Counted from the stretch's first letter, positions 9,948 to 63,608 are shown. The stretch: 64,000 nucleotides of DNA from Selaginella moellendorffii (GCF_000143415.4 NW_003314285.1:523370-587369), one strand, 5' to 3'. Translations and numbers: made by a program. Notes: generated by a model not told the origin, from the sequence alone.

Positions 9948-10437
9948 GGATTGAGGAGACCTCGTCGGTCTGGCGCCGATCGTCCTCTGCATCACGGGCT
10001 TGCTCGCGGCACACAAAAAGGCCTCTTCTTTTTAACCCTTTCCTGGGGTGGTGACGTGGCACTATCTAGTCGGTCCGTTAAAAGCACCGGCCAGGATTTC
10101 CGTTAAGCATGGCATATTCTTACCAGTGACAAGAATATTCCACGAATGTCTCTTGCGCGGGGCGATTTTTAAATTCAAACAATAGTTTCGCGCGGAGGAG
10201 AATGAATCCCGTGAACAATCAAACGCTCCACATCTCTTTTGATGTAAGGATTTGACCTAATGCGACCAACACAAGCAATAAATCCTTCCTGTTTTTCTTC
10301 AATATTTTCCAAACTTGGTGATCGTTGCAAACTATTCAAAATTTCCAAATTCTCTTAAACCATGATGCACTTTCAATTTATGGAGGAAAGCAAAAGCTCC
10401 ACAAATACAAAAAGGTTCCAATTAAGGCATATCAATT

Positions 10438-11034
10438 TCAGGCTTTCACTGCAAAAGCTGCTTTGAGCGTCTGGATGGTGTCTATGCCCACCTTGAAGGC
10501 CTTGCTTAGAACTTGATCGTCGATTCCAGACCCAAAGATGGTGGCGGGGATGGAAACAGTGCCGGCATTGGAGCTCCCGAAGGCTGAGATGGCCTTGGCC
10601 GCGTACTGTCCTTCGTTGAATTGGAAGTGGACGAGACCCTTCGGAAACACGAACGCATCGCCCGTCCCAAGCTTCTGGACGAATAGCTTGTTGGTGGTGT
10701 CCACCAGGCCAACGGCGAGGGAGCCCTCTAAAACGTAGAGGAGCTCCGAGGCCCGGGGATGGATGTGTGGGGGATTGACCGAGCTTGGCTGGAAGAAGAG
10801 CTGGGCCATGGAGACGCCCAGACCAACAAGACCTGGGAATTCCACAAGCGATGCCTTCCTCACCATGAAAGTTCCTGGCGCAGCCGTGACATCGCCGCGA
10901 AAGGCAGTGAAGGTGAAGAAGCTCGCGTTGGTGGCGGTGGGATCAGCAGCATAATCCGAGACAAGCTCCGGGTCTGCGGCAAAAACTCCTACCGCGAGAA
11001 ACAAAGAGCACACCAGCAAGTAAGCCATCGACAT
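10438..11034 (-). CDS. Germin-like protein (cupin), secreted, copy 1
   Basis: Signal peptide, germin box 1 NPPHIHPRASE and box 2 GDAFVFPKGLVHFQFN. Intronless. Confidence 0.93.
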   Translation of the reverse strand: MSMAYLLVCSLFLAVGVFAADPELVSDYAADPTATNASFFTFTAFRGDVTAAPGTFMVRKASLVEFPGLVGLGVSMAQLFFQPSSVNPPHIHPRASELLYVLEGSLAVGLVDTTNKLFVQKLGTGDAFVFPKGLVHFQFNEGQYAAKAISAFGSSNAGTVSIPATIFGSGIDDQVLSKAFKVGIDTIQTLKAAFAVKA

Positions 11035-11423
11035 ATTTCTTGATCCTTTGCGATCTAAAGAGCTTTGCTTAGAAGTGTCTATTGTTTTGGAAGGCAATTA
11101 GCTGAAGGGGAGGATGAATCCATGGGCAGAGCTGGAGGCTTTTATATTTGCAAAAGCCATAGCAACTCCAAAGTTCGTACAGATGCTAGGAAATGCGCGT
11201 GTGGGTCTGGCGGAATGAAGCAACTCAGCACACGAGACCTGGATGAAATTTGTCCTTGACTATTGTCCACCCAGGATAAGATAGACAAATCTTGTCTTCC
11301 TTTCACTGTTCCCAATCTTTCAAATGGTAAAGAATTATTAAAAGGTGTGGATTCTGGACTATATGGTTATAGGAATAACGTTGTAAAGGTATAACCGTAG
11401 CTTTTAATTTGGCAAATGTCAAT

Positions 11424-12559: not shown

Positions 12560-12757
12560 ATGGCTCACTTTTGCAAGCTTCTCCTGCTGATTCTCCTCCC
12601 TCATATTGCCCAGGCCAGCGCCCAGCCAACATAGTCATGGGAGTGACTGAGTTCCATGCCCCAGGACCGCAGTACCGCAGCCTGTCAAGGAGGTCAACTT
12701 TAAGTGATGGAAGCCCAACGTGGATGTTGTTGAGTATCTCTATGCAGAAGCGATCTC
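12560..12757 (+). pseudogene. Truncated copy of the secreted nuclease gene
   Basis: MAHFCKLLLL...QPVKEVNFK*...PNVDVVEYLYAE with deletions and a stop. The catalytic half is missing. Confidence 0.85.
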
Positions 12758-13185
12758 GCTTCAGAATCCTGTGTCCACTAGGGCATATATAGGATAATGT
12801 TATTAAATAATTGCTTTTAAAATACTGTAGGGAGTGGATACCAGCAGAAGAGAGCTCGATGAGATTTCTCTTTGACTATTCCCATCCTGGATAATAAGAT
12901 AGATAAATCTTGTCTTTCTTTCACTATTCCCATCTATTTTCCTATTCCAAAGGTTGGAATTAAAAGGTGTGGACAGTGCCTGGCTATAAGGGATTTCACC
13001 GTTCAGAATGCCGTTATGCTTAAAGAACCGATGCTGTCACGCTTTTCATTTGACTTGAATTTTTAGAAAATTGCCACATCACTGTCAAATCTTGACTAAT
13101 AGTGAGTAACTTTTCTTTGATTCTTTGAAGAAAGAAAGGGGTAAATGAAGGAAAACTCTTTATGAACAAAGGTTCATTTCTTACA

Positions 13186-13407
13186 GGGATCTCTGGATGT
13201 CGCTAGAACTTTGGACAGCCCTTTATAGGGAATTTGAGATTGTATGGGGACCGTCTAATGCAATCTATTTACCACTGTGGGGAGCGTCAAAGAAGCTCTG
13301 TGTGCGGCACTCGCAAGTGGAAACTGTGGACAAGCTCGACGTGAGGTACGAGCTGGCGAGCTCGTTTTGTAGCGCTGCCATCGCTGCTGCCGTGGCAAAT
13401 CCCATGG
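13186..13407 (+). pseudogene. Mitochondrial carrier exon-4 fragment
   Basis: VWGPSNAIYLPLWG...KLDVRYELASSFCSAAIAAAVANPM matches exon 5254-5500. Confidence 0.8.
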
Positions 13408-14075
13408 TAATTTTCAATGTTTTCTTATAGTCCCTTTTCTGGCCTACGAAGAGGTTAGTGAATCATCGAGGATTTTCCTGGTGATAATAAGAGATTAAGC
13501 AAAAATTGGATTAACGTCAGTAAAAAGAAGAATTCCATTCAATCCTCCCCGTTGATTCAGACTTCAAAGTCGTGACACGAGTGTTGAAATTTTCCAAGGC
13601 AAGGACGGAGCTGTATTTTGCCACGTACCATAGAAGACCGAAAGAGTGAAAATCAGTATGAGCATTATGCCAGAGGATGTTCTCATCAATGAACATGCAT
13701 AATTCCGCTTCCTCTTGATCTAGCAAGGAGGTGACATCTTCTGGCACTATAGCTGCTACCAATTCTTCAAAAACTTTGCTGCGCTTGCAACAACGCTTCT
13801 TCAAGTGAAAACCGTGGACAAGCTCGAGGTACGAGCTCACGAGCTTTGTAGCGCTGCCATCGCCATGGCACTTTCCTTCTTTGTTTCCAGAAGCTGATTA
13901 ACGTCAGTTTAAACATTTAAATTTGCAAATAAATTTGAATAACAACCCTAAGCCGTCTCTTTTTCTGCCGGTAACAACGTGGCTGATTCAGACTTAAAGT
14001 CGTTCAAACCCGTGAGTGTTGAAAATCTTACCCAGTTTTTCAATATAAATCAAGAGCAAGATATAGTGTCTCGCA

Positions 14076-14672
14076 ATGGCTCACTTTTGCAAGCTTCTCC
14101 TGCTACCATTGATTCTCCTTCCTCATATAACCCAGGCCATCACACAGCATCCACCCAACATAGTCATGGGAGGGGAGTGGTTGAATTCCATGCCTCAAGG
14201 TAATGAATTCAGGCCGGGAGTTTCGCAGCCTGTCAAGGAAGTCAACTTTAAGCGATGCAAGCCCAATGTGGATGTTGTTGAGTACCTCTATGCAGAAATT
14301 CGCAGGAGCGATCTGGGCGGAGGCACAAACACGAATCAGGCAATGCGAGACTGGGTAGCCGAAATTGGTATCAAGGCGGCCAATGGGAAGAAGGGCGATC
14401 AAGCTGGTCACATTATCGGAAAGAACCAGGGAGGACTGGGAACTGTCAAGTGGAACATCTTCCCACAGAATGGCAACTTCAACATGGGGGCTTATGCACA
14501 GGATGTGGAGCGATTGGTGAGTGATGCCACCAAGACTAATGGTGAGGTAAAGATGTGGTTCCAGTTTGTGTATGGTGATCAGAACAACCCTTGCCGCCCC
14601 TCCAGCTTTAACTACTATCTGGTTGCCAACGACGTTACAGTCAATAACGCTTTGGCCAATCCAGTTCCTTGA
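14076..14672 (+). CDS. Secreted DNA/RNA non-specific endonuclease (His-Me finger, Endonuclease_NS_2-like), intact copy A, 198 aa
   Basis: Hydrophobic signal peptide (cleavage about TQA|IT). Motif DQAGHIIG..GG.G...NIFPQNGNFN.GAY...E...Y..RPSSF resembles the DRGH-type nuclease toxin domain. Intronless. Confidence 0.82.
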   Translation: MAHFCKLLLLPLILLPHITQAITQHPPNIVMGGEWLNSMPQGNEFRPGVSQPVKEVNFKRCKPNVDVVEYLYAEIRRSDLGGGTNTNQAMRDWVAEIGIKAANGKKGDQAGHIIGKNQGGLGTVKWNIFPQNGNFNMGAYAQDVERLVSDATKTNGEVKMWFQFVYGDQNNPCRPSSFNYYLVANDVTVNNALANPVP

Positions 14673-15109
14673 CTAGAGCGAAGATAATGCAGAGCTACTT
14701 CTCAAGAGTACTTGCTCTTAACTAGCTCAATAAGTCAATACAAGCCACTTAATTAAAGTAGAACCAGACTCCTGTCTAGTTGTACAAATGCCCCCAGCTT
14801 GTGTGTCCTGACCAGCTCCTTGGAATCTTAAAAATAGAAGCTTATTGCTGCATAACAGGACAACTGTTTGATATTAGATGGCAGGCCTTGACTTGGCCAA
14901 TAACTTGCCACACCAGAAATTGCACTAAACAACACTTCAATGCATTATAAGCAAAATTGTTGGGCTATTAATACATTAATAACTTGATTAGGTGTTAGTA
15001 ATATTACAAAGTAATTTTTATTCCTGGGTTATTAAGCTAATAGATGATTTATAGAGCAATAACTTGATTAGGTTATTAGCTAAGATTCTTCAATTAAAAG
15101 AGCAAGGGA

Positions 15110-15620
15110 ATCTAGTAGAGATGGTTTTAATGATCTTTAAAAACCCAACCTCCAAAATCTGCTACTACAATGGAGAACAAATTGCTGAGATGAACATTTA
15201 CAAGTACCTAGCCTATTCTCTCCATTGAAGATGCACATGGAAAGAGGGAGTGAAAGACTGTGTCAAGGTAGCACAATTTGCTTATTACAGTTTCCAAACT
15301 AACTGCCATGAAATTACAGGTCCAAAACTTTCACAATGCATATGGGATATGCTAGAGGACTTGTTCATATACAAAAGTTGCAAATTTACCATACTCCATT
15401 CTTGTCTTGGAAAGTGGCCTTCTTCCAACGGAGATCCTTATGTGGATATATAGTTCTTTTTGTCAAAAGACACAAAGACAAATTGGCAGCTTAGTATAGG
15501 AGATTCCATCAACCTAATGTATGAAAAAAGGCAAATGGTAGAGTACAATTGGACAATGTGGTTAAGCCTAGATTTGGAACTTGTTATACGGGAACCCCTT
15601 GAGGACTACTCTATACGGAT
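15110..15620 (+). mobile_element. Degenerate non-LTR (LINE) RT C-terminal fragment; second partial copy at about 21815-22320
   Basis: Translates to YNGEQIAEMNIYKYLAY..TWKEGVKDCVKVAQ, similar to the LINE 'yKYLG' thumb motif. Many stops. Confidence 0.45.
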
Positions 15621-15885
15621 GGGTCACCACTGTTGCAGTGAATTTTAAATTCAAACAATAGTTTGGTGCGGAGAATGAATCCCGTGAACAATCAAACGCT
15701 CCACATCTCTTTGATGTAAGGATTTGACCTAATATGACCAACACAACTTCCCATTTTCTTCAATATTTTCCAAACTTGCAAACTTCAAAAATTCCAAATT
15801 CTCTTAAACCATGATGCACTTTTAATTTATGGAGGAAAGCAAAAGCTCCAGATATACAAAAGATGCCAATTAAGGCATATCAATT

Positions 15886-16479
15886 TCAGAATTTCAGGAT
15901 AGCCGCTTTGAGCTTCTGGATGGTGTCTGTGCCCACCTTGAAGGCCTTGGTTAGAACTTGATCTTCGATTCCAGACCCAAAGATGGTGGCGGGGATGGAA
16001 ACAGTGCCGGCATTGGAGCTCCCGAAGGCTGAGATGGCCTTGGCTGGGTACTGTGCTCCGTTGAATTGGAAGTGGACGAGACCCTTCGGAAACACGAACG
16101 CATCGCCCATCCCGAGCGTCTGGACAAAGAGCTTGTTGGTGGTGTCCAGCAGACCAACGGTGAGGGAGCCCTCTAAAACGTAGAGGAGCTCCGACGCCCG
16201 GGGATGGATGTGTGGGGGATTGACCGAGCTTGGCTGGAAGAAGAGCTGGGCCATGGAGACGCCCTGACCAGCAAGACCTGGGAATTCCACAAGCGATGCC
16301 TTCCTCACCATGAAAGCTCCTGGCGCAGCCCTGACATGGCCGCGAAAGGCAGTGAAAGTGAAGAAGCTCGCATTGGTGGCGGTGGGTTCAGCAGCGTAAT
16401 CTGAGACAAGTTCCGGGTCTGAGGCAAAAACTCCTACCGCGAGAAACAAAGAGCACACTAGCAAGTAAGCCATCGACAT
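15886..16479 (-). CDS. Germin-like protein, copy 2
   Basis: Close paralog of 10438-11034 with intact germin boxes. Confidence 0.93.
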   Translation of the reverse strand: MSMAYLLVCSLFLAVGVFASDPELVSDYAAEPTATNASFFTFTAFRGHVRAAPGAFMVRKASLVEFPGLAGQGVSMAQLFFQPSSVNPPHIHPRASELLYVLEGSLTVGLLDTTNKLFVQTLGMGDAFVFPKGLVHFQFNGAQYPAKAISAFGSSNAGTVSIPATIFGSGIEDQVLTKAFKVGTDTIQKLKAAILKF

Positions 16480-16793
16480 ATCTCTTGAACCTTTGTGATC
16501 TAAAGAGCTTTTCTTAGAAGTATCTATTGATTTGGAAGGCAAGTAGAGGAGGATGAATTCATGGCCAGAGTTGGAGGCTTTTATATTTGCAAAAGCCATA
16601 GCAGCTCCAAAGTTTACACAGATGCTAACGAAAAGCGCGTGTTCATTTGGCAGAATGAAGCAACTCGGCACACAAAACCTAGATGAAATTGTCTTTCACT
16701 ATTCCCAATCGTAAAGGGTTAAAAAGTGGGAATAAAGTTGCTTAATACCTTTGACTGTTAAGACAGAGATAGCCAGCTTTGATAAATGTCAAT

Positions 16794-16865
16794 GTCGTTG
16801 TAGTATACTGGTGAGTATTTCCGCCTGTCACGCGGACGACCCGGGTTCGATCCCCGGCAACGGCT
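16794..16865 (+). tRNA. tRNA-Asp(GTC)
   Basis: GTCGTTG/CAACGGC acceptor stem, TCCGC-CTGTCAC-GCGGA anticodon arm, GGTTCGATCC B box, upstream CAA and a downstream T-run. Position 73 is T rather than the usual G. Confidence 0.88.
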
Positions 16866-17089
16866 TTCTCTTTTCTTTTTGAAAATATTTAGGGCTAGTG
16901 AATCTTGGAAAAATAATGCTCACTGTCCGATGGTGTGTAGATTCTTTTGCTTGGGAACAAGAAGGAAAACAAGGAAACTCTATTGTTTCTTTGCAGCAGA
17001 GATTGAATCGAATGCCTTATAGCTGCGAGCATATTTCGTTCTTTTTAAATAAAAAAACGGAGAATAATGGCGATCTTTGTGTGTTTCTA

Positions 17090-17790
17090 TCAACGAGGTG
17101 GAACTGGCAGTGCCGTCTTTCAATGCTCTTTACACTATTGTCAGGATGGAGAACTCTCTACAAAGGATAGGCCACGATCACACAGATTTGCTTCTCACAG
17201 GCAATGTATACATATGGTCGTCTATCAATCCGCCAAGAAAATCGTTCCAGAATTCTAGCTTGGATTTTTCTCCTTTTTCTCTGTATTTGTGGTGGAAGTG
17301 ATTGGAGGATTCATGGCCAACAGCTTAGCGATTCTGGCCGACGCGGCACACTTGCTCTCCTTGTTTTCTTCCATTTCGTTTCCGCAGTGCAATTTGGAGG
17401 TGGATTAGCTGCCACTCTTATACGGCAGAGACAAATGGTGCAAGCTTTCAAGGCTGCTACAAGTTACTCTTTTTTCTACAAACAAAAGATGGAATTTGAT
17501 GACTTTTCGGATTCCTTACAGGGATCTTTGGATACCGGGCAAGAAGGAATGAGCTTCCTTTACCGGGGGTTTGCGTTATTGTATCATATAATGCAATATA
17601 TTTACCACCAAAGAAGTTCATCATCTGCGTCATGATCAAGACGAGGATCCAAGTCCAAGGCAAGAGCAATGTTTCGAGCTGTACGACTTACGCTGGGCCT
17701 GCAGATGCTGCGGCCGCAATCTAGAGAAACTAGGGATGGGGAGGTTTTGCGAGTGGAATCACGTCGAGGATTTTCTGGGTGGTATGATAA
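17090..17790 (+). pseudogene. Mitochondrial carrier pseudogene (unit 2); a further fragment lies at about 18740-19030
   Basis: AVQFGGGLAATLIRQRQMVQ and VMIKTRIQVQGKSNVS with frameshifts. Confidence 0.8.
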
Positions 17791-17857
17791 TCCTAAGGAA
17801 AGAATATTCATGCATGCCACGTGGAATTCCCTTATCCATCATCAACGGTGTTTCGCA

Positions 17858-18050
17858 ATGGGTCACTTTTGCAAGCTTCTCCTGCTACGTTGATTCTCCT
17901 CCCTCATATCGCCCAAGCCAGCGCAGCCAACATAGTCATGGGAGACTTGAGTTCCATGCCACGAGGGAATGAATTCAAGCAACTTTAAGTGATGCAAGCC
18001 CAACGTGGATGTTGTTGAGTATCTCTATGCAGAAATTTGCACAAGCGATC
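17858..18050 (+). pseudogene. Truncated copy of the secreted nuclease gene
   Basis: MGHFCKLLLL...NFK*CKPNVDVVEYLYAEI, truncated. Counterpart of the 12560 copy. Confidence 0.85.
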
Positions 18051-19231
18051 TCATACCAATGCTTCAGAAAATAGAAGTTTACTGTGTATACTAGCGCATA
18101 TAGATCCTTTTAAAATACTGTAGGGAGTGGCCCCAAAAACTTAAGACACACCCACTAAACTTTCATTTACAATTGCCAATGACTGGTGATGAATTTGTAA
18201 TAGTAATACATTTATTTTATGATATGAAGGGACTAACAATATTAAAATCAAAATGCTCCATAAGTTATTTAATTTTAAAGAGGAATTCTTAAATGATTAT
18301 TGTACTCTTTTTTGCAAAATCCTCAGCCTGAGCTGGAGGTTTTTATTTGCAGAAGCCATAGCAACTCCAAAGTGTGTACAAATGCTGGGAAAAATGAGTG
18401 TGTTCATGCAGAAGAGACCTGGATGAGATTTGTCCTTAACTATTCCCATCCTGGTAAGATAGATAAATTTTGTCTTTCTTCCATCTAGTTTCCTATTCCA
18501 AAGGTTGGAATTAAAAGGTGGATTCTAGAATATAAAGGCTTGAACTCTTAGAAAATTGGGTGCTTGAGATGTTCTAAGCTGGGACGCTAGTGGATGCTAG
18601 TGGATGGCATCATATCACTGTCAAATCTTGACTAATAGCTGCGCTTTAAGGCTATTTTGTATTGAATTCTTCTTTTCAATCTTTGGAATGTTCTTCCAAT
18701 ATTTTTTTTTTCTTCTGGAGAATAATGGTGCTCTTTGTTCAAGGGGCTGTGGCAATGCATATACAAAGGGCCTTTTGATGCTCTTTACACTATTGCCTTG
18801 TGAGAAGGATGGAGAACTCTGTACAAAGGATATGCCACACTGACACAGATTTGCTTCTCACAGGCAATGTATATGGGCAAAATTCGTTCCAGCTTTCTGG
18901 CTTGGATTTCTCTTTTTTTTCTCTCTCTATCTCCCTTTTTATTCTTTCTTCCATTTTGTTTCAAGGTGATGAAGATAATCCCACAGTGCGAGTGAATCAT
19001 CTAGGATTTGCTGGGTTGCTCCTGATAGTATGATAATAAGAGATTAAGAAAAGAATCTCCATAGTCAGTTAAAAGACGAGACAGGGTTGCCACGTAGAAT
19101 TCCATTCACTTCCTGGGACAATCCTGGCCGTTGATTTAGACTTAGAAGTCGTGACACGAGTGTTGAAATTTTCCACCCTCAATACAAATACCCACCCAAT
19201 ATCAAGAGGCCATCATCAACGGTGTTTCGCA

Positions 19232-19828
19232 ATGGCTCACTTGTGCAAGCTTCTTCTGCTACCGTTGATTCTCTTCCCTCATATCGCCCAGGCCATCACA
19301 CAGCGTCCAGCCAGCGTAATCATGGGAGGGGAGTGGGTGAATTCCATGCCGCGAGGGAATGAATTCAGGCCGGGAGTAGTGCAGCCCGTCAAGGAGGTCA
19401 ACTTTAAGCAATGCAAGCCCAACGTGGATGTTGTTGAGTATCTCTATGCAGAAATTCGCAGGAGCGATCTGGGCAGAGGTACAAATACGAATCCGGCAAT
19501 GCGAGACTGGGTAGCCCAGATTGGTATCAAGGCGGCGAACGGGAAGAAGGGCGATCAAGCTGGTCACATTATCGGGAAGAACCAGGGAGGATTGGGAACT
19601 GTGAAGTGGAACATTTTCCCACAGAATGGCAACTTCAATATGGGGGCTTATGCACAGAGTGTGGAGCGATTGGTGAGTGACGCCACCAAAACGAATGGTT
19701 TGGTGAAGATGTGGTTCCAGTTTGTGTATGGTGATCGGAACAACACTTGCCGCCCGTCCAGCTTTAAGTACTATCTGGTTGCCAACAACGTTACAATCAG
19801 TAATGCTTTGGCCAATCCAGTTCCTTGA
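19232..19828 (+). CDS. Secreted DNA/RNA non-specific endonuclease, intact copy B, 198 aa
   Basis: Same length as copy A with about 23 aa differences by eye. Signal peptide and catalytic motif are intact. Confidence 0.82.
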   Translation: MAHLCKLLLLPLILFPHIAQAITQRPASVIMGGEWVNSMPRGNEFRPGVVQPVKEVNFKQCKPNVDVVEYLYAEIRRSDLGRGTNTNPAMRDWVAQIGIKAANGKKGDQAGHIIGKNQGGLGTVKWNIFPQNGNFNMGAYAQSVERLVSDATKTNGLVKMWFQFVYGDRNNTCRPSSFKYYLVANNVTISNALANPVP

Positions 19829-20447
19829 AGCTAGGATGAGCCGTAAATAAAACGGCTAGTTCCAAGAACTAGCCCAATAAAAGTACTAAATCCGTGTACT
19901 CGTGTCTCGCTATACAAATGCCACCGGCTAACCATCTTTCTGCAGCTCCCCTTTCAGCACATACTCAAGTTATCAGATTTGCTACCATGGAAGACCTTAA
20001 GAGTGAAAATCAGTATTGCAGTCTTGAGAATTATGTGCAGAGGATGTTCTCATCAATGAACATGCATAGTTCCGCTTCCTCTTGATCTAGCAAAGAGGTG
20101 ACATCTTCTGGCACTCTAGCTGCTACCAATTCTTCAAAAACTTTGCTGCACTTGCAGCCACGCTTGGTTTCTGTGCACGGCACTCTCAAGTGAAAACCGT
20201 GGACAAGCTCGAGGTACGAGCTCACGAGTTCGTTTTGTAGTGCATCATGGTAGGCAGAAAGGATAAGTTTTTCCTACCAACGCCTTTTAGAAGAGACGGC
20301 TTAGGGTTGTTAACGTTTGCTTCTAACGTGGCACAACGTGGCCGTCGATTCAGACTTAAAGTTGTTCAAACCCGTGAGTGTTGAAAATCTGTACCCGGTT
20401 TCTCAATATAAATATCCAGCCAAGAGCAAGAGCAAGAGCAAGATATA

Positions 20448-20950
20448 AAGGGTCACTTATGCAAGATTCTCCTGCTACCATTGACTCTCCTTCCTCATGG
20501 GAGAGTCGCAGCCTGTCAAGGAGGTCAACTTTAAGCGATGCAAGCCCAATGTGGATGTCGTTGAGTATCTCTATGCAGAAATTCACAGGAGCGATCTGGG
20601 CAGAGGCACAAACACGAATCTGGCAATGCGAGACTGAGTAGCCGAGATTGCTATTAAGGCGGCCAATGAGAAGAAGGGCGATCAAGCTGGTCACATTATC
20701 GGAAAGAACCAGGGAGGACTGGGAACTGTCAAGTGGAACATCTTCCCACAGAATGGCAACTTCAACATGGGGGCTTATGCACAGAATGTGGAGCAATTCG
20801 TGAGTCCAAGACTAATGGTGTGGTAAAGATGTGGTTCCGGTTTGTGTATGGTGATCCGAACAACCCTTGCCGCCCCTCCAGCTTTAACTACTATCTGGTT
20901 GCCAATGACATTACAATCAGTAATGCTTTGCCCAATCCAGTTCCTTGTCT
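20448..20950 (+). pseudogene. Near full-length nuclease pseudogene
   Basis: ATG lost, N-terminal deletion, in-frame TGA at DW (gactgagta) and a frameshift before KTNG. It shares 5' and 3' flanks with copy A. Confidence 0.85.
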
Positions 20951-21715: not shown

Positions 21716-23325
21716 ATAGACTAACATATTAATATATTGACATATTTACACTAATTGATGTTTTAACCTTCCTTTTATATTAGCTATTTTAAGGATATTT
21801 TCGAAACTAAATTCTCACTAAAGGCATATGGAAAGAAGTGAAAGACTATATGAAGGTAGCACAATTGGCTTATTACAACTTTCAAGCTGACTACCACATC
21901 AAAGTTGTCATTAGCTAGAAAGCTAAACACTAGTGATAGCCAAGAAAACATTTTATGCAGCTAAGGTTGTTTCATGAATTTACAGGTCCAAGACTTCTAC
22001 AATGCATATGGGATATGCTAAAGGATTTGTTTATATACCAAGAGTTACAAGTTTAACATATACCATACACCATCCTTATCTTGGAAAATGACCTTCTTTC
22101 AATAGGAATTCTTTTATGGAAATGAACATTGTTTTTGTAAAGCTTTACAATAAAACCACCAAGATAAATTGGTAGCTCCAACTATAGGAGATTCCATCAA
22201 CTTAATATATGAAAAGAATGGCAAATGGTGGAGTGAGTTGCACAACTAGACAATATCATTAGGCTTAGACTTGGAACTTATTGTATAGGACTCCTTGATG
22301 TTTACTCCATATAAATAGCTTATTACCATTCTGGTGCCCATAGGCTTAAGGTAGAATAAAGGCATCATTATAAACTATACATCCCATGGGAAAACCAACT
22401 ATGCAAACAATGCACTCTAGGATAGGTGGAGGATGTTTTCCACCCCCTTTACCAAGGCCATTGTTACCAACATCTACATATGGCATTTCCTTGGTATGAG
22501 TAGGATCAAGTCTTCCTGTAAGACCAAGTCTCCCTACTTTAAGATTGCAATAGATAACATAAACGAAAAGAATAAAGGAATTAGCAAGGGAGTGCAATAC
22601 ACCCATGTAAATAGGGTCTCATGCTTCTTAGATGGGAATCTATATATAATGTGTATGTGTTTATATTATGAATTTTTGTAAGTTATAGCACTTGTTTTCC
22701 TATTCTTCTACTTAGTTCTTCCCAGCAAAGTCGGGGAACTACACTGAAAATCTAGATATAAAATTGTTAAGTCTAAAGATTTTACTAGAGCTTACAACAT
22801 GAATAGTCCATGTTTTTAAAACCTTTAAGACTCTTTGAAAAGCTTTTAATATTCACTTTCTTCAACTTGGAGTATTATCAAATACACAAAACAGAGAAAA
22901 ATTAAAATTGCAACTTTGATTTATTTATCTCCATATCTATGTATGTCCAAGATCTTTATCTGTTGGAAATGAAATGTATAAAAATTATTATGCCACTTTT
23001 TTCCCACATATGTTTAAATGCTTAAAAGCTAGTTTAGAAGGTGTACATGCTTGGATGTATAAGAAAATCAAGAAAGATTTAAAAACATATAACTAAAATA
23101 ATTTCATGGTGAAGAACAATATTCCATTATATCAATAAGTGCTATGGGATATTTAGGCTACTCTATAATGTAATGTGAGAGTCATAGTTTCTTTTTTATG
23201 TTATTATATTACCATTTTTAAAAAGAAAAAGAAAATGGTATTGATTGTAGGTATTGTTCTAGCCATAAGATTTATTATGTTTATAATGTCTTACTTTTGT
23301 AGAAATTTAGTTCATTATGAGTAAA

Positions 23326-24165
23326 NNNNNNNNNNNNNNNNNNNNNNNNNNNNNNNNNNNNNNNNNNNNNNNNNNNNNNNNNNNNNNNNNNNNNNNNNNN
23401 NNNNNNNNNNNNNNNNNNNNNNNNNNNNNNNNNNNNNNNNNNNNNNNNNNNNNNNNNNNNNNNNNNNNNNNNNNNNNNNNNNNNNNNNNNNNNNNNNNNN
23501 NNNNNNNNNNNNNNNNNNNNNNNNNNNNNNNNNNNNNNNNNNNNNNNNNNNNNNNNNNNNNNNNNNNNNNNNNNNNNNNNNNNNNNNNNNNNNNNNNNNN
23601 NNNNNNNNNNNNNNNNNNNNNNNNNNNNNNNNNNNNNNNNNNNNNNNNNNNNNNNNNNNNNNNNNNNNNNNNNNNNNNNNNNNNNNNNNNNNNNNNNNNN
23701 NNNNNNNNNNNNNNNNNNNNNNNNNNNNNNNNNNNNNNNNNNNNNNNNNNNNNNNNNNNNNNNNNNNNNNNNNNNNNNNNNNNNNNNNNNNNNNNNNNNN
23801 NNNNNNNNNNNNNNNNNNNNNNNNNNNNNNNNNNNNNNNNNNNNNNNNNNNNNNNNNNNNNNNNNNNNNNNNNNNNNNNNNNNNNNNNNNNNNNNNNNNN
23901 NNNNNNNNNNNNNNNNNNNNNNNNNNNNNNNNNNNNNNNNNNNNNNNNNNNNNNNNNNNNNNNNNNNNNNNNNNNNNNNNNNNNNNNNNNNNNNNNNNNN
24001 NNNNNNNNNNNNNNNNNNNNNNNNNNNNNNNNNNNNNNNNNNNNNNNNNNNNNNNNNNNNNNNNNNNNNNNNNNNNNNNNNNNNNNNNNNNNNNNNNNNN
24101 NNNNNNNNNNNNNNNNNNNNNNNNNNNNNNNNNNNNNNNNNNNNNNNNNNNNNNNNNNNNNNNNN
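23326..24165. other. Assembly gap (840 N)
   Basis: Run of N. Confidence 1.
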
Positions 24166-29600: not shown

Positions 29601-30749
29601 GCAAGAGCTTTCCATGCACTTACCCTCTTCCTCCACATAATATCTAGGAATCTAAAGTACCCTCTAACCTTGGATGGATCGCTTAGGCAGTGAGAACCCA
29701 CGGCCTGTAAGCTGAAAGACAAAAGCAGTCTTGCACATAGGAAGAATGAATATGTATGGATGATGAGAGCCAAAATGGTTGAGAGGAAAAGATAGAAAAT
29801 ATGAATGGACAAAAAAATAGGAATAGAGTATTGAGTTTGAAGACAGAAAAAAACACCAACAACGAAAAATTGTGGGGTCAAACTAGAACTTAGACCGAAG
29901 AAAATTAAAAGAGGAAAATGTGCTAAAGAAAACCTGTGCCCTCAAAGTTCAAGTGATGAAGATATAAATGGATGAATGAAAATGTGGAATTACCCCATTA
30001 ATGACTACAACTTGTATTAAGTCCCTGAAAAGAGCAAGTTATGTAATATCTCTGTAACAATGTAGAAGTAAATATGGAAAATTATCTATGCCAAAGAAAA
30101 CAAAATGGGATAGAAATTTTTTTAAGAAGGACTTAGATGCCTCTATATGCAAGGCCTAACCATGTCTCAAATTTGCTGCTAAACTAAAAACTGTTATACT
30201 GATATCAACTTGTAATTGTAACTTGTATATGATAATGAATTTCTGTCTAAATTTTTTTGTGTCTAGAGAGGGAAATTTTTCTCATGTCTATGGATAATAA
30301 TTAAATTGAATGTAAAAATCATGAAGAAAATGTTCAAGCTCACATGTAGTTGCATTTGGTATTTGCAGTCAACACAATAAAGAAAATTAATATGGCATTT
30401 GCAGTCAACACAATAAAGAAAATTAATAATAATAACTATAACCAATGAAGAATAATTCTGAGAAAGATGATGATAAAGGAAAACCAAAAACTCCAAATAT
30501 AGCCTAGAAAAACTCAAAGCTTATAATTGAGTTTTTCTAGAGAATTTAGAAATAGTCACCCCATCAACAAAAAAGAAGCGAAGAGAAAATGGGAGAAAAT
30601 GAAAAGAGAAGTATGAAAATGTGAGAAAATTAGGGAAAAGAAATAAGAAAAACAAAGAAAAGGGATAGTAATGGAACTTGATCATCACTAAAATGTTGAG
30701 TATGAGAAAATTTAAGTTGATCTTATGTTCTTGAGTTTTAAGAATTAAT

Positions 30750-31450
30750 TTTAAAGGAACTCTTTAATAGTGCTTTCAAACTAACTTGAGGTTAAGACTG
30801 AGGGTTAAGGGTTTTGGGTGGGAGTGAGCATGGACTCAGGTGGTGCCAAAAAAGCTACCCAAGGAAGTTTTCAAGAGCAATTCCCACTTTCGAAAGGGAA
30901 ATCAATTACAATATTTTTGATTTATATAAAATAGTGCTCCACTTGAGTATTATGTAGCTCATTGGTCTTTACTTCTTCCTAGGGCTTTGGGCCTTCCTTT
31001 CAGGATAAAAGTGGGGGAGTAAAGGTATCTATATCGAGCTGTTAGGCCCTAGTGTTTTTGTGTGGGGTCCCAAAGCAAGAGATGCACAAACGATTTGGGA
31101 TTTATAAAGTCTTATGATCAAATCTTGTTATACTAAGGGATGTTAGGAACCTAAAAGCTTGGTTAGGGCACTCAAAGGAAAAGGGTGGGGAAAGTATCCA
31201 TGAGGTTTACACTGGGCTGTAATGTTTCGAAATGTCATCCTAAAGTTTTGGACTAGGGAAAAGAAGAAGAGCAATCCTTTTATGTAATAATCAAGGATAT
31301 GGTCATGTGGCAAAGTAGTCCCAGAGGTTAATGGGACTTAGTAGTTAAACCTTCAGAGGTGGTGTTGGCAAGCACAACCTTGGATGGAAAAAGATTTAGT
31401 GGTGACCAAAAAAGGGATATTAAGGAAAGGTGTTCTTTATGTCTCTAGGC
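30750..31450 (-). repeat. Decayed LTR fragment related to 53300-53800 and 57480-57700
   Basis: Reverse-complement similarity, e.g. gggtgggagtgagcatggactcagg vs cccaagcccatgctcactcccaccc, with heavy transition decay. Confidence 0.65.
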
Positions 31451-31609
31451 CATGAGTGCACCTTTTTTTCCAATTGATTTTGGGTTTTGGGATATTTTGG
31501 GTTAAGTGTTTTTAAGTTTGAATGATATTGCATTGAGTGACTTCTTAGGAAGTACAAATTCAAAAAATTACATTTGCCATTAAAGAAGTTTCGAGCTCAA
31601 CTTTGTTGG

Positions 31610-34600
31610 TTGGATAGGAACTTCTATATATTTCTTGTTGAGTATATTTGGCATGGCTCTTAATTCTCTTTTGCTATGTCTTGCATTAGTTTAATAAGAA
31701 TCCTTGTATATTGAAACTAGTCCCTCAATATCGTTAGATGATAGTTTACCATGTTTGCCAAACACCTTCACTATTATGCCCTTTGTGTGAAAAATGTCTA
31801 GATTTGCTCATTTGGCATATTTATAAAATGTGGAGATTGCCTTGAATACAATGGTGTTTATCCCATGTCCAAATTCATAATCTAAAGATATTCTATATTT
31901 AGTAAGTTTTGAGTTTATCCTAGAGACTAACTCCTAGTACTAAGGGTGGCTAAAGCCCAAAGTGTGTGTTCCTCAAAGTGGGGTTTTGGGAGGTTCCAAA
32001 TGCATAGTAGGGATAGTGGGTAAGTCAAATATAGTTGACCAATATAAGGCATTAACTCCCATTTACATGCTTATTTTTGTTCCACATCCAACTTAGGTTT
32101 AAGCCTAAGTTCCATACTATGCTAGCTAGTGGAGTATCCATATCTTCATGTTAGGCCACCGGTATGTTAAAGTAATGATAAATTTCATTTGGCTTCATTT
32201 TGCGTGTTAGTACTAGCATTAGGATGTTGAATGCTTTAGGACTATTTCAAGTTGCTTTGTGCTTCTGTCCTTTTGTTCCTTTAGTTGTACACTCAAAAGT
32301 CACTCTGTGCTTTGGTTTCTTTGCTCCTTGGCTTCATGCTTAAGAGTTTGGTTTCATTCCTTCATTCAGTGGCTCAAAGCTTTGAAATTTAGGTTTTGCT
32401 CTACTATCCTTTATACACATGACATGTGACATGTAACATATAGAGGGTTTAGTTTTTGTTTCGTGGTTATTCTATGATAAATCAAAGGGTAAAAACCACA
32501 TGTGTTGTATTTGGTATCAGAGGATACATTTTAGCGAGTACTATCCAATGAGATTGGGCAACTAGTTTCGTTGCATACGCAAAGATAAAAATGATGATCC
32601 AAGTGGGTATACATTTGGGTGCAAAGGCTTTGCATTTGTTCCTTAGGTATGGATTTTAGTTACTTTTTTGTATTAAATTATATGAGCTTGTTCTTGGGCT
32701 TAGAGGATGGATTAAGATATTCCATTTGCACAAGTTTACGCTTGGGTTTATGAGTGAGGCATATTAACAACTCAATATTACACTTTGAGTTGATAAAATT
32801 AATGTTAGCTTATCGGTGGTTCTAGAAGTTGTTCCATATACTATAGGTAAAAATAAACCTTTCCTAGATTTGCTATGAGTGGGAAATAAGCTGGTCCATA
32901 GCTATTTAGCATAACACTAGTGGATCCTTCCTAAGCATAATTATAAGTGGATCAATCAAGATTGTAGGGATTAGTCTATTGGTTTAAGTAGTCATTGCCG
33001 TGCTCTCTCATAAACTTTTCTTGAATTGGATTGAAAGTAGTGCAAAAGCAAGCTTGAGATTTAGTCAAAGATGAGACAAAAAAGAGAATCCTTAGAGATG
33101 AAGGATTAAATATGTAAATCATTTTATTTTCTTCAAGAGATAATTTATAACAAGGTGTTAACTCATTGCTTATGTTCACATCATGCAATTGAAAGTCCTT
33201 GTTAATTATAGTGATCTTATAAGTGGTGAGTCGTGGGATGGATGGTGGTGAAACATTAAACCATTTTGTCTAAACTTGCTATTGAAAATTTGGGTTGCAA
33301 TGTTCAATTCTTTTCCAGAAAACTTTGCTATTGCTCTTTGAGTAGTTTAGTGTTGGATTAGTTTTGAGTTTGGTTTGATAGAGAGTGGCATAAGCTTGTC
33401 TATGTTGTGAATACAAGTTAATGATGTGGACTATTGTAAATCTTTATTGGTGGGGTGTAGCATTTATATTGCATTTTATTGAATAGAGTTTACATTTGAT
33501 ACTCACATAAACCTTTATAATAGTGACATGACATTGCTTGTGTTATTGCTTGATTGATGATCAAGTTATTATGATTTATATATATCATATCCATGTGATA
33601 GTGAGCAATGTATTTACAAAGTTGCTTGGATAAACAATGATCAATTTTAAAGTGGTTAAAAGTGAAGCCAATCTACTTGCAAGTAATAGCATTATAGTAG
33701 CTTTAACTGGATACTTAATAATAATCCATTATGCTAAGTTTAAGTTGGTACCTTATTTTCTTGAGAGTTGCCTATTGAGGTGTTGGAAAAGGGTTGTAAC
33801 ATTCATTTGCTATAGCTCGTCAGTTGATCTGTTAGCACTTGGAGTAGATTGTTGGATGGGGAAGGTGTGTAACTAAGATATTGATATTACTAGCACTTGT
33901 GTTAGTGGAAGTGGCGTTATTATTTCAAGTGATTTTTTCCTTAGACCTTGATTTTCTATGTCATTTTTCTTGTTATTGTTTTGGCTTCACATTAGGTTTT
34001 GAAGGTGATTAAAGAAAAGTGTTAAATGCAATATAGATATCTGAAGATGTGGTCTCATTGATCTTGACTTCATCTTAGTAGCGTTACATTTTTGCTAAGG
34101 ATTGTGATGTTTAACTTAGTTGTTTGAGGTTAAAATGTTAATACCAATACTATAGCTTTGTCTATGAGGAGGTTGTGTACCAATAAGAGTCTATATCATG
34201 ATTTTCACTTTAGTTTCAACTAAGTGTGATCATATATAATTATCCTCTTTAAAGCATGCTCAGAACTATTGGTTATGTGCATTAATGAGCTTATTGCAAT
34301 TGAGTTGGATTCGAGTGGCAATTTAGTTCATGCTTATTCATGTATATAGGGTGTTACATTTAGGTTGGACAAGTATATGATTCAATGGCATAAATTTAGT
34401 ATTTGGGTCTTGTAAAAGACAAATTGAAGAGTGATTATTCGTTACTTTGTAACTAGTGATTGCTTGTAGATTTTGTCAAAAGATTATGGACATTTGCTTC
34501 ACTCAATGAAGATTTATTAATGATGGGTTTACTTTACAGAATGGTGTTGTAGAGGATTGTGTCCTTAAACTTGCATGGTTTTTCCATGTTGGCATGTCAA

Positions 34601-37600
34601 CTCTACCTTTATCAATATCATTTAGTTATGTTTATTTTATGGTGTTAGATTTTATTAGGTTTTGAATGTGGTGAATCACTCATTGATAATGTGTTAACTA
34701 AGTTTTGCTGCAGGTTTAGTCTCAGATACTAAATAAGTATCTTTGACTTTGGTTAGCTTAGTTGCTAAAGAGTTTTGAGTGGTGATTCATTATTGCTTTT
34801 TTCTAGCTTTGTTCTGGTATTGATGGCATTAAAGTGATGCCCTATCATTAATATTATTGTTGTTGATATTTGAGTGAAATGAAATATCTCTCCATAGAAT
34901 TGATATTGAGATTTATTAGTCTCAATGCAAATAATGTTGGTATTTGAGCTGAAGCTTTGTGTTTTTGGCATCCATGCAATTGTTAGCTAACACAACTATA
35001 TTAACATTCAAATAAACTAAGTGGCAAGTTTGAATTAGTTGTGTTCTAGACAAGATTGTTTAGTAAGGGTTAAGTGTTGAGGTTTTCCTTAAAGTCATGG
35101 ACTATGCTAACTTTACAAGAGGAAGAGTTAGTGATTGATATTAAAGATATTAGTTCTTTATTGGATTTGAGTTGAGGATATATTGATCATTAATATTACT
35201 TCTTATGTTTGTTATGAAATGAATTATGTCTTACTATAGAAGATGGATTCATGGAGGATTAATTTGGTGGTCACTCGTTAAGCATAACTTTGTTATGTTT
35301 ACTTTTTAGATTAATGTAGAAATGCTTTTCATTAACTTTGTATTATAATGTTTAGCTTATAGATGTGTTGAAAGGATATTGTGATTTATACTATGATTTC
35401 TTCTTTGGCATTGACATTAGTTCATATGAAACTTGTGATCATTATTTGGTGAGACTTGGCTATATGCTTTTTCAAACTTTTGGTTCCTTGAGTTTTTATG
35501 CTCATTGTTCCATTTGTTAAAATTTTTTAGGGAAAGCATTCTAACTCATAAATTTGATGTTGAAGTTAGTATTTACATTTGGCAATCATTAGTGATGATT
35601 GACTATTATCCAGGTTAGTTGATCATCTTTGTCAAAGATTTTACTTGATTATTGTTAATATAGAATGCTTTGTTGGCTTTTAGGATGGTGAATTCTTTCT
35701 TCAATGATTTCTCTATTGATGGGATGATTATAGATTTTTGCATTACCACAAGTTCTTTATAGTTTACTCTGGATTGGTCTTTTCAGTTTGAGATATTAGT
35801 AGGATGTTATTAGTTTTTGCTTAAACAACTTGAGTTCCTTCGTATTATTGACTGAGATTTATTTAAGCTGGCTAGTACAATAGTTAACATAAATGAGTGT
35901 TTATTGGTCTTGCTACATTCATTCTATTTTGTTGATTATTGCTCGAGTTGGTTCTGATAGATTAGGATGTTATTTCTTTCAAATGATACATTCGCGAGCA
36001 TTTTACTTGCTAATTAATGATACTTTGTGTTCTTTGAAGTTATTTTTCATAAGTTGCTGAACATGCTATCTGTAATCTTTGATAGTTAAGATTTATCATT
36101 GAATTTTCTTGATGATACATCAGATATTTAATTTTGTTTGATGATAAATCTTATATTTTCCGGTTATGATAATCTTGGTGGTTCCTATACTCTAATACTA
36201 GTTTATCAGATGATAACTTACTTGGAATGCTTTTGTGTTCTAATATAAGCTTTATTCACTGATAATTAATTCTCTTAGATATCATTGTCTTTGACTTTGA
36301 TATTGTCCATTTATTGATCTTTGTGTTTGGGCCAGTATAGACAAACTGGCTTTGGCACTTTATGTGCATTATGAAATCTTTAGTCATGGGGTAGCTATTG
36401 TCAACTGATCACATCATCTGTCTCTCTATCAATGTTCCTTATTTCGTTAAAAGAGCGTGATCATGTAAAAACTTTAACTACCTATTTACAGTAGTCTATC
36501 GATTACCGACAAGTTTTGTTTCTTTATTCATGAGGGTTGGGGCCTCTGGCTTTTCTCTTTATGTCCTTACAGGCAGGGGTGTATCACACTTTTGTAAGCT
36601 GGGTGACATATGAAGTAGCAAGGGTGGCTGATTCAATTAGTCATTTCCTTGTCAGTGATGGCCAAAAGGTGTTTGAGTTGGTAGTGCATTTGCTTTGGAC
36701 AAAGAAATTACCCTAACTCATTTAAGTTAGTGCATTTCTCATATAATATGATTGCCATAAACTTTTTTTTGGAGTTGTGTCCTTGGCAGTGGTTTAGAGT
36801 TGAGTATGCATTGATGAAAACATCAATCTTCCCTAAGGGGGGGAGAGTGTCATAAATATAATTGTGGGTATCACTTTCGGATATTTTTTCGTTACTGCCA
36901 TGACGGCAAAAAGTTCATATTGTTAGACCCTTTATCAATCCTTTTATCAGTCCTTTTTGTTCAAGTGTTAGTAAACTGGGCTTAGGATCTGTACTTAGCC
37001 AGATGGACATAAAATAGAAACTCTTATGTATTTTTTGTTGAGCATACTTGGCTCGGCTATTAATTCTCTTTTGCTCTATCTTACACTGGCTTGACAAGAA
37101 CTGTTACATATTAAAACTAATCCTTCAATATTACTAGATGATAACTTACTGTGTTTGCCAAACACCTTTGCTATTATGCTCTTTGTGTTAGTCTCATTCC
37201 GGTCCCAAATGCTATTTATGGAAAGTGTCTAAATTTGCTTATTTGGCATATCTTCAGAAAGAGATTATTCTAAACACAATAGTGTTTATCTTGTGTCTAA
37301 ATTTGCAATCTAAGAACATTCTATATTTAGTAGGTTTCAAGTTTAACTCTTGGTACTAAGGGTGAAAGCCCAAAGAGTGTGTTCCTAGAGGGGGTTTGTA
37401 TATATCCCAAATATATAATAGTGATAGTGGGTAGGTTGGGCATAATTGACCAACTTGAGGCATATTCTATCTCTTGTTTATATGCATGTCCTTATTTTGC
37501 ATCTGAAATTTAAGTTCTACTCTACTGTCCTTTTGACATGTGGCATGTGACACATGGCATGTGGAGGGTTTAGGTTCCACTTCATGGTTATTCTATAATA

Positions 37601-37641
37601 AATCACCATAGAATATAAAGGTAAACCCCACATATACTACA
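31610..37641 (+). mobile_element. Non-autonomous degenerate LTR retroelement (family A), copy 1
   Basis: 5' LTR ends at about 32509 and is followed by the PBS TGGTATCAGAG (tRNA-iMet). PPT AAGGGGGGGAGA lies at 36835-36846. The 3' LTR is about 36848-37641, ends in TACA and resembles 31610-32509. The internal region has no ORF. Confidence 0.78.
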
Positions 37642-42904: not shown

Positions 42905-43537
42905 AATGCCCACTTCTCAACTTTTTAAAGTTCCCGAACATCATCGTACGAGAATCAGTCCTTTCCAAATGGTGGAGGAGATGGGAGTCGCAAGAGAGAT
43001 TAGAGACCTTCCAATCAAAGTGAAGAGCTTTTGTGGAGGAATAGATTCATATCTGATACAGTCCCTTGGTTGGACCATCCAAGCTTGGAACAAAATTCTA
43101 TCGGATCACTCCACAGTTGACTGTGAATGCATAAACAAGATTTTTCCTTACACAAGGTTTGTATTAAAATTGAGTGAGTGACACCGCATTGTCACAAAGA
43201 AAATCACCACGTGTTTTGGTGATTTTGATAAGTTGCGTGGAGAAAATTGTGTTCTGTAGCGAGGAAAATATTCCGATGGTTCCTCGCAAGGTTCTTCGAA
43301 TTGTAGCATTGAGAGAGAGTGTGGAAGTTTGGAGCCCATAATTTAAATCTAGGTTATGAGAAAAATCATGTGAGTGTTGATATCGACCCGGATGACACTT
43401 CGCTTCTCTCCTTCCTTCGCGATTCCAAATGCTGGCCGATCGGGGCTAGGGATGGTCGCGGATTTCTCTTAGATCGGCCTCGAAATATTTCGGGCTCGTC
43501 GATCGCCGCGGTCGATCGATCGGGGTTCTTTCCCTCC

Positions 43538-63501: not shown

Positions 63502-63608
63502 TAAACCTTACCTGAATTGGACTTAAGGAGGTTGTGAATAAGACTCCTCCAAGTGGTTAGAGGTGTGGTTAAGTGACTAAAGTAGAATGGAAAAATTAGT
63601 CGCTTACA
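63502..63608 (-). repeat. Inverted fragment of the family B LTR terminus
   Basis: Reverse complement of about 57131-57230 (tgtaagcgactaa...ttccattctactttagtcacttaaccacacctc). Confidence 0.85.

Follow-up and report, generated by a model that had tools for sequence, protein, structure and literature searches.

We describe two genes in a 64,000-nucleotide (nt) stretch of the Selaginella moellendorffii genome (GCF_000143415.4 NW_003314285.1:523370-587369, hereafter the window) that encode a nuclease related to the toxic domain of bacterial toxins such as EsaD. On balance, we favor the view that they are domesticated, bacterial-type, EsaD-like PF13930 nuclease genes residing in the nuclear genome of this plant, and we document their family, fold, active-site conservation, chromosomal integration, transcription, selection and taxonomic distribution. 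Compared with scaffold GL377634.1 (L003) of S. moellendorffii, the window is collinear and 95-97% identical; it is from the same species and probably represents either the other haplotype or another assembly. Both haplotypes share the same layout, each with two intact copies of the 198-amino-acid (aa) nuclease. In the window these two intronless open reading frames (ORFs) lie on the + strand, and their products are 88.4% identical (tblastn). The genes and their predicted catalytic cores are located as follows.

14076-14672, + strand: copy A, EsaD-like PF13930 nuclease with an N-terminal leader, 198 aa, intact and intronless (ORF, Pfam, RNA reads, fold)
19232-19828, + strand: copy B, 198 aa, intact and intronless paralog, 88% identical to copy A (ORF, Pfam, RNA, substitution rates)
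14397-14510, + strand: predicted catalytic core of copy A, with D108-x-x-G-H112, N127-I-F-P-Q, N136 and E145 (family alignment, EsaD/EndoG alignment)
19553-19666, + strand: predicted catalytic core of copy B (counterpart of the copy A core)

Both proteins match the Pfam family PF13930 (Endonuclea_NS_2, His-Me finger clan), copy A with 35.1 bits (E 1.8e-8) and copy B with 33.3 bits (E 6.6e-8), where the curated gathering cut-off is 27 bits. The match to PF01223 stays below threshold (15 bits, cut-off 23). An AlphaFold2 model computed from a 22-sequence alignment reaches a predicted local distance difference test (pLDDT) of 85.1 and a predicted template modeling score of 0.81, the leader alone being disordered. 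A structure search (VIA) over 48,161 representative chains returned Staphylococcus aureus EsaD as the best match (8gun_A; Z 13.0 over 141 residues, 3.0 Å), followed by NucA, EndA, EXOG, Serratia nuclease and EndoG. Every one of the top 12 hits (Z 8.5-13.0) has a beta-beta-alpha-Me nuclease or nuclease-like fold, after which Z drops to 4.9. Foldseek likewise puts EsaD first. By sequence, EsaD was reached only with a 44-sequence family profile, which matches EsaD/EssD over nearly its whole length (E 2.1e-13); searches of the Protein Data Bank (PDB) gave no match with the single protein and nothing but noise with the 22-sequence profile. An earlier reading of this DNA, made from the sequence alone, had proposed the resemblance to the EsaD-like PF13930 domain and suggested Pfam and structure prediction as checks; both recover the His-Me fold, and the family profile agrees with them. 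The DNases EsaD, YeeF and Dickeya RhsA have a domain of this family as their toxic part (PMC9990079; PMC5714182). The kinship to bacterial toxins holds for the domain itself, but the nearest bacterial relatives, described below, are not LXG or type VII toxins.

The alignment places the D-x-A-G-H motif of the family on D-D-G-G-H of EsaD. The His112 column reads alanine in the H528A mutant chain, and plant His112 therefore occupies the position of EsaD His528, which is mutated to alanine in 8gun. Residues H112, N136 and G119/G120 are invariant in the 44-sequence alignment, while D108, N127, P130, E145 and R174 are at least 90% conserved; H112, N127, N136, E145 and R174 are kept in all four intact alleles. 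The stretch N-I-F-P-Q...N136-x-G...E145 aligns with the corresponding part of EndoG, its N136 and E145 falling on H-L-N...L-E, and the Serratia chain fits the same profile positions. We take the plant N136 and E145 positions to be the metal-ligand asparagine and the water-cluster glutamate, as in EndoG and Serratia nuclease. The motif quoted in the sequence-only reading is present in both intact copies and identical within the catalytic core. Two cysteines, Cys61 and Cys173, for which the sequence-only reading suggested a possible disulfide, are kept in all four Selaginella alleles but are not conserved among relatives. Sequence comparison and the structural model identify the plant protein as an EsaD-like His-Me finger nuclease with intact active-site residues, and it is likely to be catalytically active.

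The nuclease genes are transcribed, unspliced and regulated. In a stranded RNA sequencing (RNA-seq) run carrying the same species label (X15), reads cover 14100-14699 at a depth of up to 17.5 and 19100-19899 at a depth of up to 12.6, with no splice joints reported over either ORF, and coverage is about 10-fold lower in runs X16 and X17. These figures come from a sample of about 12% of run X15, with a 96% likeness threshold for placing reads. All X15 read pairs have the orientation expected of + strand RNA, and no reads fall in 14700-16699 or 17500-19099, nor on the neighboring germin-like gene. The sequence-only reading had made its case depend on expression, which the stranded data provide.

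Most X15 reads over copy A (14149-14612) carry variants of the other haplotype (e.g., 12 of 15 at position 14319): the plant that was sequenced either has no other allele of copy A than the L003-type one or expresses chiefly that one. A few reads, and contigs, at 16793-16864 and 17289-17360 match only stretches of about 72 nt and run on into unrelated sequence on both sides. These stretches are exon-sized pieces of the mitochondrial-carrier pseudogene region, and an expressed paralog elsewhere is the probable source of the reads.

The RefSeq model of this gene (LOC112340718, P0001; L003:10001-10507) has 136 aa, starts at Met31 and takes out 32 codons as an intron. It is probably wrong, because an unspliced contig spans the excised codons, no joint is reported there, and these codons form the N-terminal beta-hairpin of the structural model. 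The full 198-aa ORF is intact in both haplotypes, and the public annotation calls the product an uncharacterised protein.

The ratio of nonsynonymous to synonymous substitution rates (dN/dS) between copies A and B is 0.18-0.24 at a dS of about 0.24, and it falls to 0.055 in the catalytic core (codons 99-150). This indicates purifying selection on the nuclease paralogs since their duplication. The 21-codon leader has a dN/dS of 0.21 at a dS of 0.32. Comparison of copy A in the window with copy A of haplotype 2 gives a dN/dS near 1, with 13 differences.

The leader and the putative promoter elements upstream of the genes are listed here.

14076-14138, + strand: leader of copy A, codons 1-21, signal-peptide-like (absent from homologs; hydropathy, dN/dS, pLDDT)
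19232-19294, + strand: leader of copy B, codons 1-21 (counterpart of the copy A leader)
14041-14050, + strand: TATA-like box CAATATAAAT upstream of copy A, kept in all four alleles
19180-19189, + strand: TATA-like box CAATACAAAT upstream of copy B, kept in all four alleles
20404-20413, + strand: TATA-like box upstream of a third, decayed copy

Bacterial and moss homologs begin at M-x-N-R-P-P...P-x-G-A-E-W-L-N, which in Selaginella is preceded by 21 extra residues; the Met1 of the homologs aligns with plant Ile22, and the leader is missing from all of them. It comprises a positively charged n-region with Lys6, a 12-residue hydrophobic core (peak Kyte-Doolittle value 3.28) and T-Q-A at positions -3 to -1, in keeping with the n/h/c organization and the -3/-1 rule of signal peptides, and it evolves as coding sequence. 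Its residues 9-19 have a pLDDT below 50. In three alleles the distance from the first T of the TATA-like box to the ATG is 45-49 nt; in copy A of the window, which has a 13-nt deletion, it is 32 nt. Upstream of copy A, a scan for sigma-70 promoters gave no match. The leader is probably translated, and we consider it fairly probable that the Selaginella nuclease is secreted. What the sequence-only reading had called a signal peptide does precede a full-length bacterial-type module, while secretion itself rests on sequence features.

Signal-like leaders also occur in more distant animal members of the family, from Adineta steineri, from Cimex lectularius (counted from an internal Met), and in P0043 and L056, so that several independent eukaryotic acquisitions appear to route the domain to the secretory pathway. 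L056 is a metatranscriptome contig whose positions 77-640 encode a PF13930 protein of more distant kinship (38% identity); the 5' leader is AT-rich, and the protein starts with a clear hydrophobic signal. It appears to be a further eukaryotic acquisition, probably of the animal type, like those of Adineta and Cimex.

The two intact genes belong to a larger array, whose other components are the following.

12560-12749, + strand: decayed 5' nuclease fragment, interrupted by frameshifts and stops, that retains the leader and about 75 initial codons (tblastn matches in two frames, three-frame reading)
17858-18052, + strand: decayed 5' fragment paralogous to the one at 12560, comprising the leader and the first ~75-80 codons, with frameshifts and stops (tblastn, three-frame reading)
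20448-20945, + strand: third copy, a pseudogene with a degenerate leader, loss of codons ~22-44, an in-frame stop and a frame change near codon 150 (tblastn, three-frame reading)
15886-16671, - strand: germin-like cupin gene, co-duplicated with the nuclease (Pfam Cupin_1, E 2.2e-34)
within 10164-11264, - strand: germin-like paralog of the gene at 15886-16671 (89.5% nucleotide identity, offset 5476)

Self-comparison shows that the array arose by tandem duplication of a segment, at offsets of 5.2-5.5 kb. Each duplicated unit comprises a germin-like gene on the - strand, pieces of a mitochondrial-carrier pseudogene, a 5' nuclease fragment and an intact nuclease gene. The sequence-only reading had counted five copies, two of them intact and intronless and three decayed, evolving by birth and death; ORFs, tblastn and three-frame reading recover all five, and the segmental duplication with its intact and decayed copies agrees with that mode of evolution. 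The haplotype-2 counterpart of the third copy keeps codons 2-149 in one frame and then changes frame too. No RNA reads fall on the fragment at 17858-18052. The germin-like gene at 15886-16671, which is the only germin-like copy within the aligned stretch, has no reads in any of the three RNA runs. Between the nuclease copies we found only the germin-like gene and pseudogene pieces, and no cognate immunity gene is adjacent (a statement on this locus, not on unlinked sites). This agrees with the earlier remark that no immunity gene is visible, as nothing immunity-like and expressed lies between the copies.

Elsewhere in the window, positions 23326-24165 are an assembly gap of 840 N, which accounts for a bin of very low GC content at 22001-24000 and for two spurious long ORFs across the gap. 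An ordinary pentatricopeptide-repeat gene without introns occupies 41342-42913 on the - strand (PPR_2, E 8.9e-59). The regions 30000-38000 and 60000-64000 are AT-rich (GC 0.30-0.38) with a strong positive GC skew (0.2-0.3).

Searched exhaustively, 1.84 billion representatives yielded 271 matches at E <=1e-3 and 25 at E <=1e-10. Many of the 271 are long proteins with the domain at their extreme C-terminus, and the wider family and the neighbors in shape include the tips of RHS, CdiA, LXG/YeeF and extracellular contractile injection system toxins. A close subfamily, with both bacterial and eukaryotic members, is 40-57% identical to the plant protein and co-linear with it across the whole mature protein. 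The bacterial proteins closest to the plant protein are of two kinds: standalone ones of ~170 aa and cyanobacterial ones linked to chitinases. Among the former, P0007 comes from a 122-kb contig with transposases, a resolvase, integrases and a TacA/acetyltransferase pair, P0019 adjoins genes for a PatG protease and a sigma factor, and Neoroseomonas eburnea has a standalone gene of 167 aa. The P0007 gene lies in a transposase- and integrase-rich region, between a gene for a Y_Y_Y/BBE-domain protein and the TacA-GNAT toxin-antitoxin pair (L001:7088-11782). These surroundings suggest that the nuclease module is itself mobile in bacteria.

In Nostoc sp. 106C and Fischerella sp. CENA71 the module ends a repeat protein of 618-726 aa encoded directly after a GH18 chitinase gene. 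The metagenomic protein P0024 unites LysM, a GH18 chitinase and the nuclease in 1220 aa, on a contig that also carries SLATT, STAND NTPase and TPS-CHAT genes. The three chitinase-linked loci are L024:2786-6396, L023:3290-6471 and L010:10001-13663. The recurring link to chitinases suggests toxins aimed at chitin-bearing organisms. Matches from a metagenome scan are bacterial contigs from human-gut metagenomes (L039-L055).

The family is not limited to Selaginella: mosses have intronless, leaderless homologs. Three annotated proteins of Ceratodon purpureus, from chromosomes 11 and 12 of two isolates, fall into the P0188 cluster, and we assign this clade to mosses for that reason. The Ceratodon genes (e.g., KAG0556134.1 and KAG0599679.1) have ordinary plant genes around them. 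Other eukaryotic relatives include many RNA-seq or metatranscriptome contigs of ~1 kb with a 5' leader, a GC-rich ORF (GC content at third codon positions 0.68) and an AT-rich 3' untranslated region. Relatives of this transcript type have a TATA box ~30 nt upstream of where their transcript contigs start. The closest of them are P0002 and P0164, and we assign the P0002 clade to plants because a leucine-rich-repeat (LRR) receptor-kinase pseudogene piece lies in its flank. NCBI, UniRef and EukProt contain close-subfamily members from just two named plants, Selaginella and Ceratodon.

In our phylogeny, the Selaginella copies form one clade (100/100) within a standalone subfamily (100/99), whose sister group is formed by the C-terminal domains of the chitinase-linked cyanobacterial proteins. 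There is weak support (82/63) for placing Selaginella with bacterial P0007 and one clade of plant transcripts, and a clade with the bacterial Neoroseomonas and P0019 proteins is nested beside this grouping. As the family is overwhelmingly prokaryotic (271 representatives, the contexts checked being mostly bacterial) and patchy in plants, we infer that the plant nuclease genes very likely originated by horizontal transfer. The event may be old or repeated. The horizontal acquisition proposed in the sequence-only reading is supported as far as a bacterial-type origin is concerned, while on nesting inside bacteria, the tree test it had suggested, approximately unbiased (AU) tests reject neither a plant clade nor a grouping of Selaginella with bacteria (p 0.08-0.32).

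How the gene reached the plant can be pictured in more than one way. A single acquisition in an early land plant or before, followed by vertical descent to mosses and lycophytes and loss elsewhere, as opposed to a transfer of its own from bacteria into the Selaginella lineage, is a possibility that we take seriously, although we lean slightly away from it. It would fit the intronless Ceratodon homologs on two chromosomes and the many moss-like transcripts, and a clade uniting all plant-type sequences is not rejected by AU tests (p 0.31; 0.128 with an earlier set). However, the best tree splits the plant sequences, with P0007 joining one plant clade (90/86) and a bacterial standalone clade lying among the plant clades; a grouping of Selaginella with the bacterial clade is equally acceptable (p 0.317), that of Selaginella with the two main plant clades has p 0.081, and no named homolog is found in other annotated plants. 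We rejected a giant virus (Nucleocytoviricota) infecting a Selaginella ancestor as the donor, which we deem very improbable. Giant-virus-like genes have been reported in the Selaginella genome (PMC4083422), and in an Atlas language-model search the leader-bearing protein led to clusters that are mostly Nucleocytoviricota (score 0.96). But the families of that report are an exoribonuclease and EFJ10148, neither evidently this gene; a family-motif scan of 2.9 million viral contigs gave no relative, viral PF13930 structures are 9-20% identical to the plant protein compared with 40-57% for bacterial and moss relatives, and the leaderless relative P0004 matches bacterial clusters. The chance of bacterial contamination or an assembly artefact is negligible, and we exclude it, even though the ORF is intronless, has bacterial-type relatives and is higher in GC content than its flanks (0.50 compared with 0.36-0.45). 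The gene is integrated in the host chromosome: it is present in two independently assembled haplotypes that are 3-5% apart, and it is interleaved with germin-like genes and with pseudogene pieces of neighboring plant genes, which the sequence-only reading had rightly held against contamination. On the 1-Mb L003 scaffold it is flanked by intron-containing plant genes, with LRR-kinase, mitochondrial-carrier, Vps26 and cupin genes annotated there. It also has a TATA-like box and coverage in species-labelled RNA-seq.

Several observations weigh against a bacterial-type domain that was transferred to the plant and given a secretory leader. The arginine of the classical DRGH motif is missing, the plant motif being D-Q-A-G-H and that of relatives D-D-A-G-H; EsaD itself has D-D-G-G-H, and the arginine is therefore not needed for membership in PF13930. 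Within the standalone subfamily the moss clades are the first to branch, and the plant sequences are not placed with support inside a named bacterial clade (polytomy or moderate support). Moss homologs are leaderless, so a plant can tolerate the nuclease module without secretion. Coverage of the window allele starts only at ~14090, and the RefSeq model starts at Met31. These last points would fit the same enzyme remaining in the cytosol, with transcription starting at or after the upstream ATG and translation from Met31 giving a 168-aa protein that acts, for example, in cell death, stress-induced or programmed, or in nucleic-acid turnover, as would the TATA-like box lying just 32 nt before the ATG in copy A of the window. 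We regard this version as unlikely. The leader frame is intact in all four alleles and constrained at the dN/dS given above, the relatives have an N-terminus homologous to residues 22-30, so that coding reaches upstream of Met31, and the box stands at 45-49 nt in three of the four alleles. The RefSeq model that starts at Met31 also excises 32 codons that a contig spans unspliced and where no joint is reported. As for the coverage, X15 reads on copy A come mostly from the other haplotype, and the 13-nt haplotype indel upstream of the ATG, combined with the 96% threshold, probably causes the drop near 14090.

The history we propose for the leader-bearing nuclease is as follows. Bacterial versions of the module either stand alone or form the C-terminal end of large proteins, of which some are chitinase-linked. 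A toxin-type module of ~170 aa, of the standalone kind, would have reached a plant lineage through horizontal transfer. Later, in the line leading to Selaginella, the frame would have grown by 21 codons in the upstream direction, creating the signal-peptide-like leader; the initiator Met of the homologs aligns with plant Ile22. The leader-bearing gene would subsequently have been duplicated in tandem along with the germin-like gene, two copies being kept and three decaying. Co-translational entry into the endoplasmic reticulum would keep this immunity-less nuclease away from nuclear and organellar DNA and deliver it outside the cell or to the vacuole. There His112 would act as the general base and Asn136 and Glu145 would hold the metal-water cluster, so that DNA and/or RNA would be cut non-specifically in a metal-dependent manner.

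A role in defense or on extracellular nucleic acids is a plausible speculation. It would be in line with the co-amplification with germin-like genes of apoplastic type, with the chitinase link of the closest bacterial fusions, and with the retention by bryophytes of microbial toxin-type genes such as KP4 and FB lectin. The fullest version of this scenario, to which we give only tentative credence, is a secreted, immunity-free EsaD-like weapon of the apoplast, or an enzyme for extracellular DNA, whose leader arose de novo in Selaginella and whose module was acquired early or exchanged repeatedly between soil bacteria and early plants, surviving only in mosses and spikemosses. Killer toxins delivered by chitinases exist, and the chitinase-linked bacterial fusions recall them. 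The chitinase link of the nearest cyanobacterial versions is a hint that the module was ancestrally directed against an organism containing chitin, for example a fungus.

We found no paper describing a plant PF13930/EsaD-like nuclease; the supplementary lists of two large plant surveys of horizontal transfer and domains were outside this search, and a bare listing there is possible. It is recognised that bryophytes and other early-diverging plants have acquired microbial toxin genes horizontally (PMC12513842). The genes described here are of this known kind, and they stand out by the lineage-specific gain of a leader and by the distribution over mosses and spikemosses. As the same foreign nuclease is leaderless in mosses and newly leadered in Selaginella, the two offer a natural comparison, and the locus is a testable case of a host taming an immunity-less toxin by compartmentation instead of an inhibitor. 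The protein is also a candidate for a class of secreted plant nucleases beyond S1/P1 and RNase T2.

Comparison with other systems helps to place these genes. A parallel in plants is provided by the genes for KP4 killer protein and FB lectin, which bryophytes gained from microbes by horizontal transfer and which are likewise of toxin type (PMC12513842). They follow the same pattern of short or intronless microbial genes that bryophytes or lycophytes keep and express, with proposed roles in defense, but they have other folds and activities, and a nuclease toxin domain is absent from the text of that study (PMC12513842). The moss homologs (KAG0556134.1, KAG0600355.1, KAG0599679.1 and moss-like transcripts) belong to the same subfamily as the Selaginella protein, with 44-57% identity, and are likewise intronless and nuclear. 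They are 165-180 aa long, have no signal peptide and are annotated as hypothetical, and tandem amplification beside germin-like genes is not known for them.

Among bacterial proteins, the standalone PF13930 proteins of ~170 aa (P0007, P0019 and that of Neoroseomonas eburnea) are 40-55% identical to the mature plant protein and co-linear over it, sharing the N-terminal P-x-G-A-E-W-L-N and a C-terminal N-P end. The leader of the plant protein is missing from them, as is its 5-residue insertion in front of D-x-A-G-H, and transposases, integrases and toxin-antitoxin genes lie nearby. The chitinase-linked cyanobacterial proteins (Nostoc sp. 106C, Fischerella sp. CENA71 and P0024) carry the same module in their C-terminal ~170 residues, at 42-45% identity, either on a repeat region of 450-550 aa after a GH18 gene or directly behind LysM and GH18. 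This is a delivery layout like that of polymorphic toxins, which the plant gene does not have. Serratia nuclease, Anabaena NucA, EndoG, EXOG and EndA, all PF01223 proteins, share the fold of the plant protein (Z 10.4-11.6), and their N-x-x-P-Q...N-x-G...E stretch aligns with it via EndoG; they form a different Pfam family, are larger and have the classical DRGH arginine that the plant protein lacks.

In bacterial polymorphic toxins of the EsaD, YeeF and RhsA type, a delivery region (LXG, RHS, CdiA or PAAR) accompanies the nuclease, and distant relatives of the plant protein do have RHS, LXG or CdiA regions. Such a region is missing from the plant protein, which consists of leader and domain only. 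EsaD/EssD of S. aureus (PDB 8gun, 8guo) is the best match by structure and profile, with PF13930 membership and the catalytic histidine column in common, and its D-D-G-G-H and the plant D-Q-A-G-H are both of the D-x-G-H type without the classical arginine, at an overall identity of ~14-16%. EsaD is the C-terminal domain of a larger protein that is exported by a type VII system and neutralised by the immunity protein EsaG. The plant protein, by contrast, is a bare domain behind a eukaryotic-type leader, with neither a trafficking domain nor a neighboring immunity gene.

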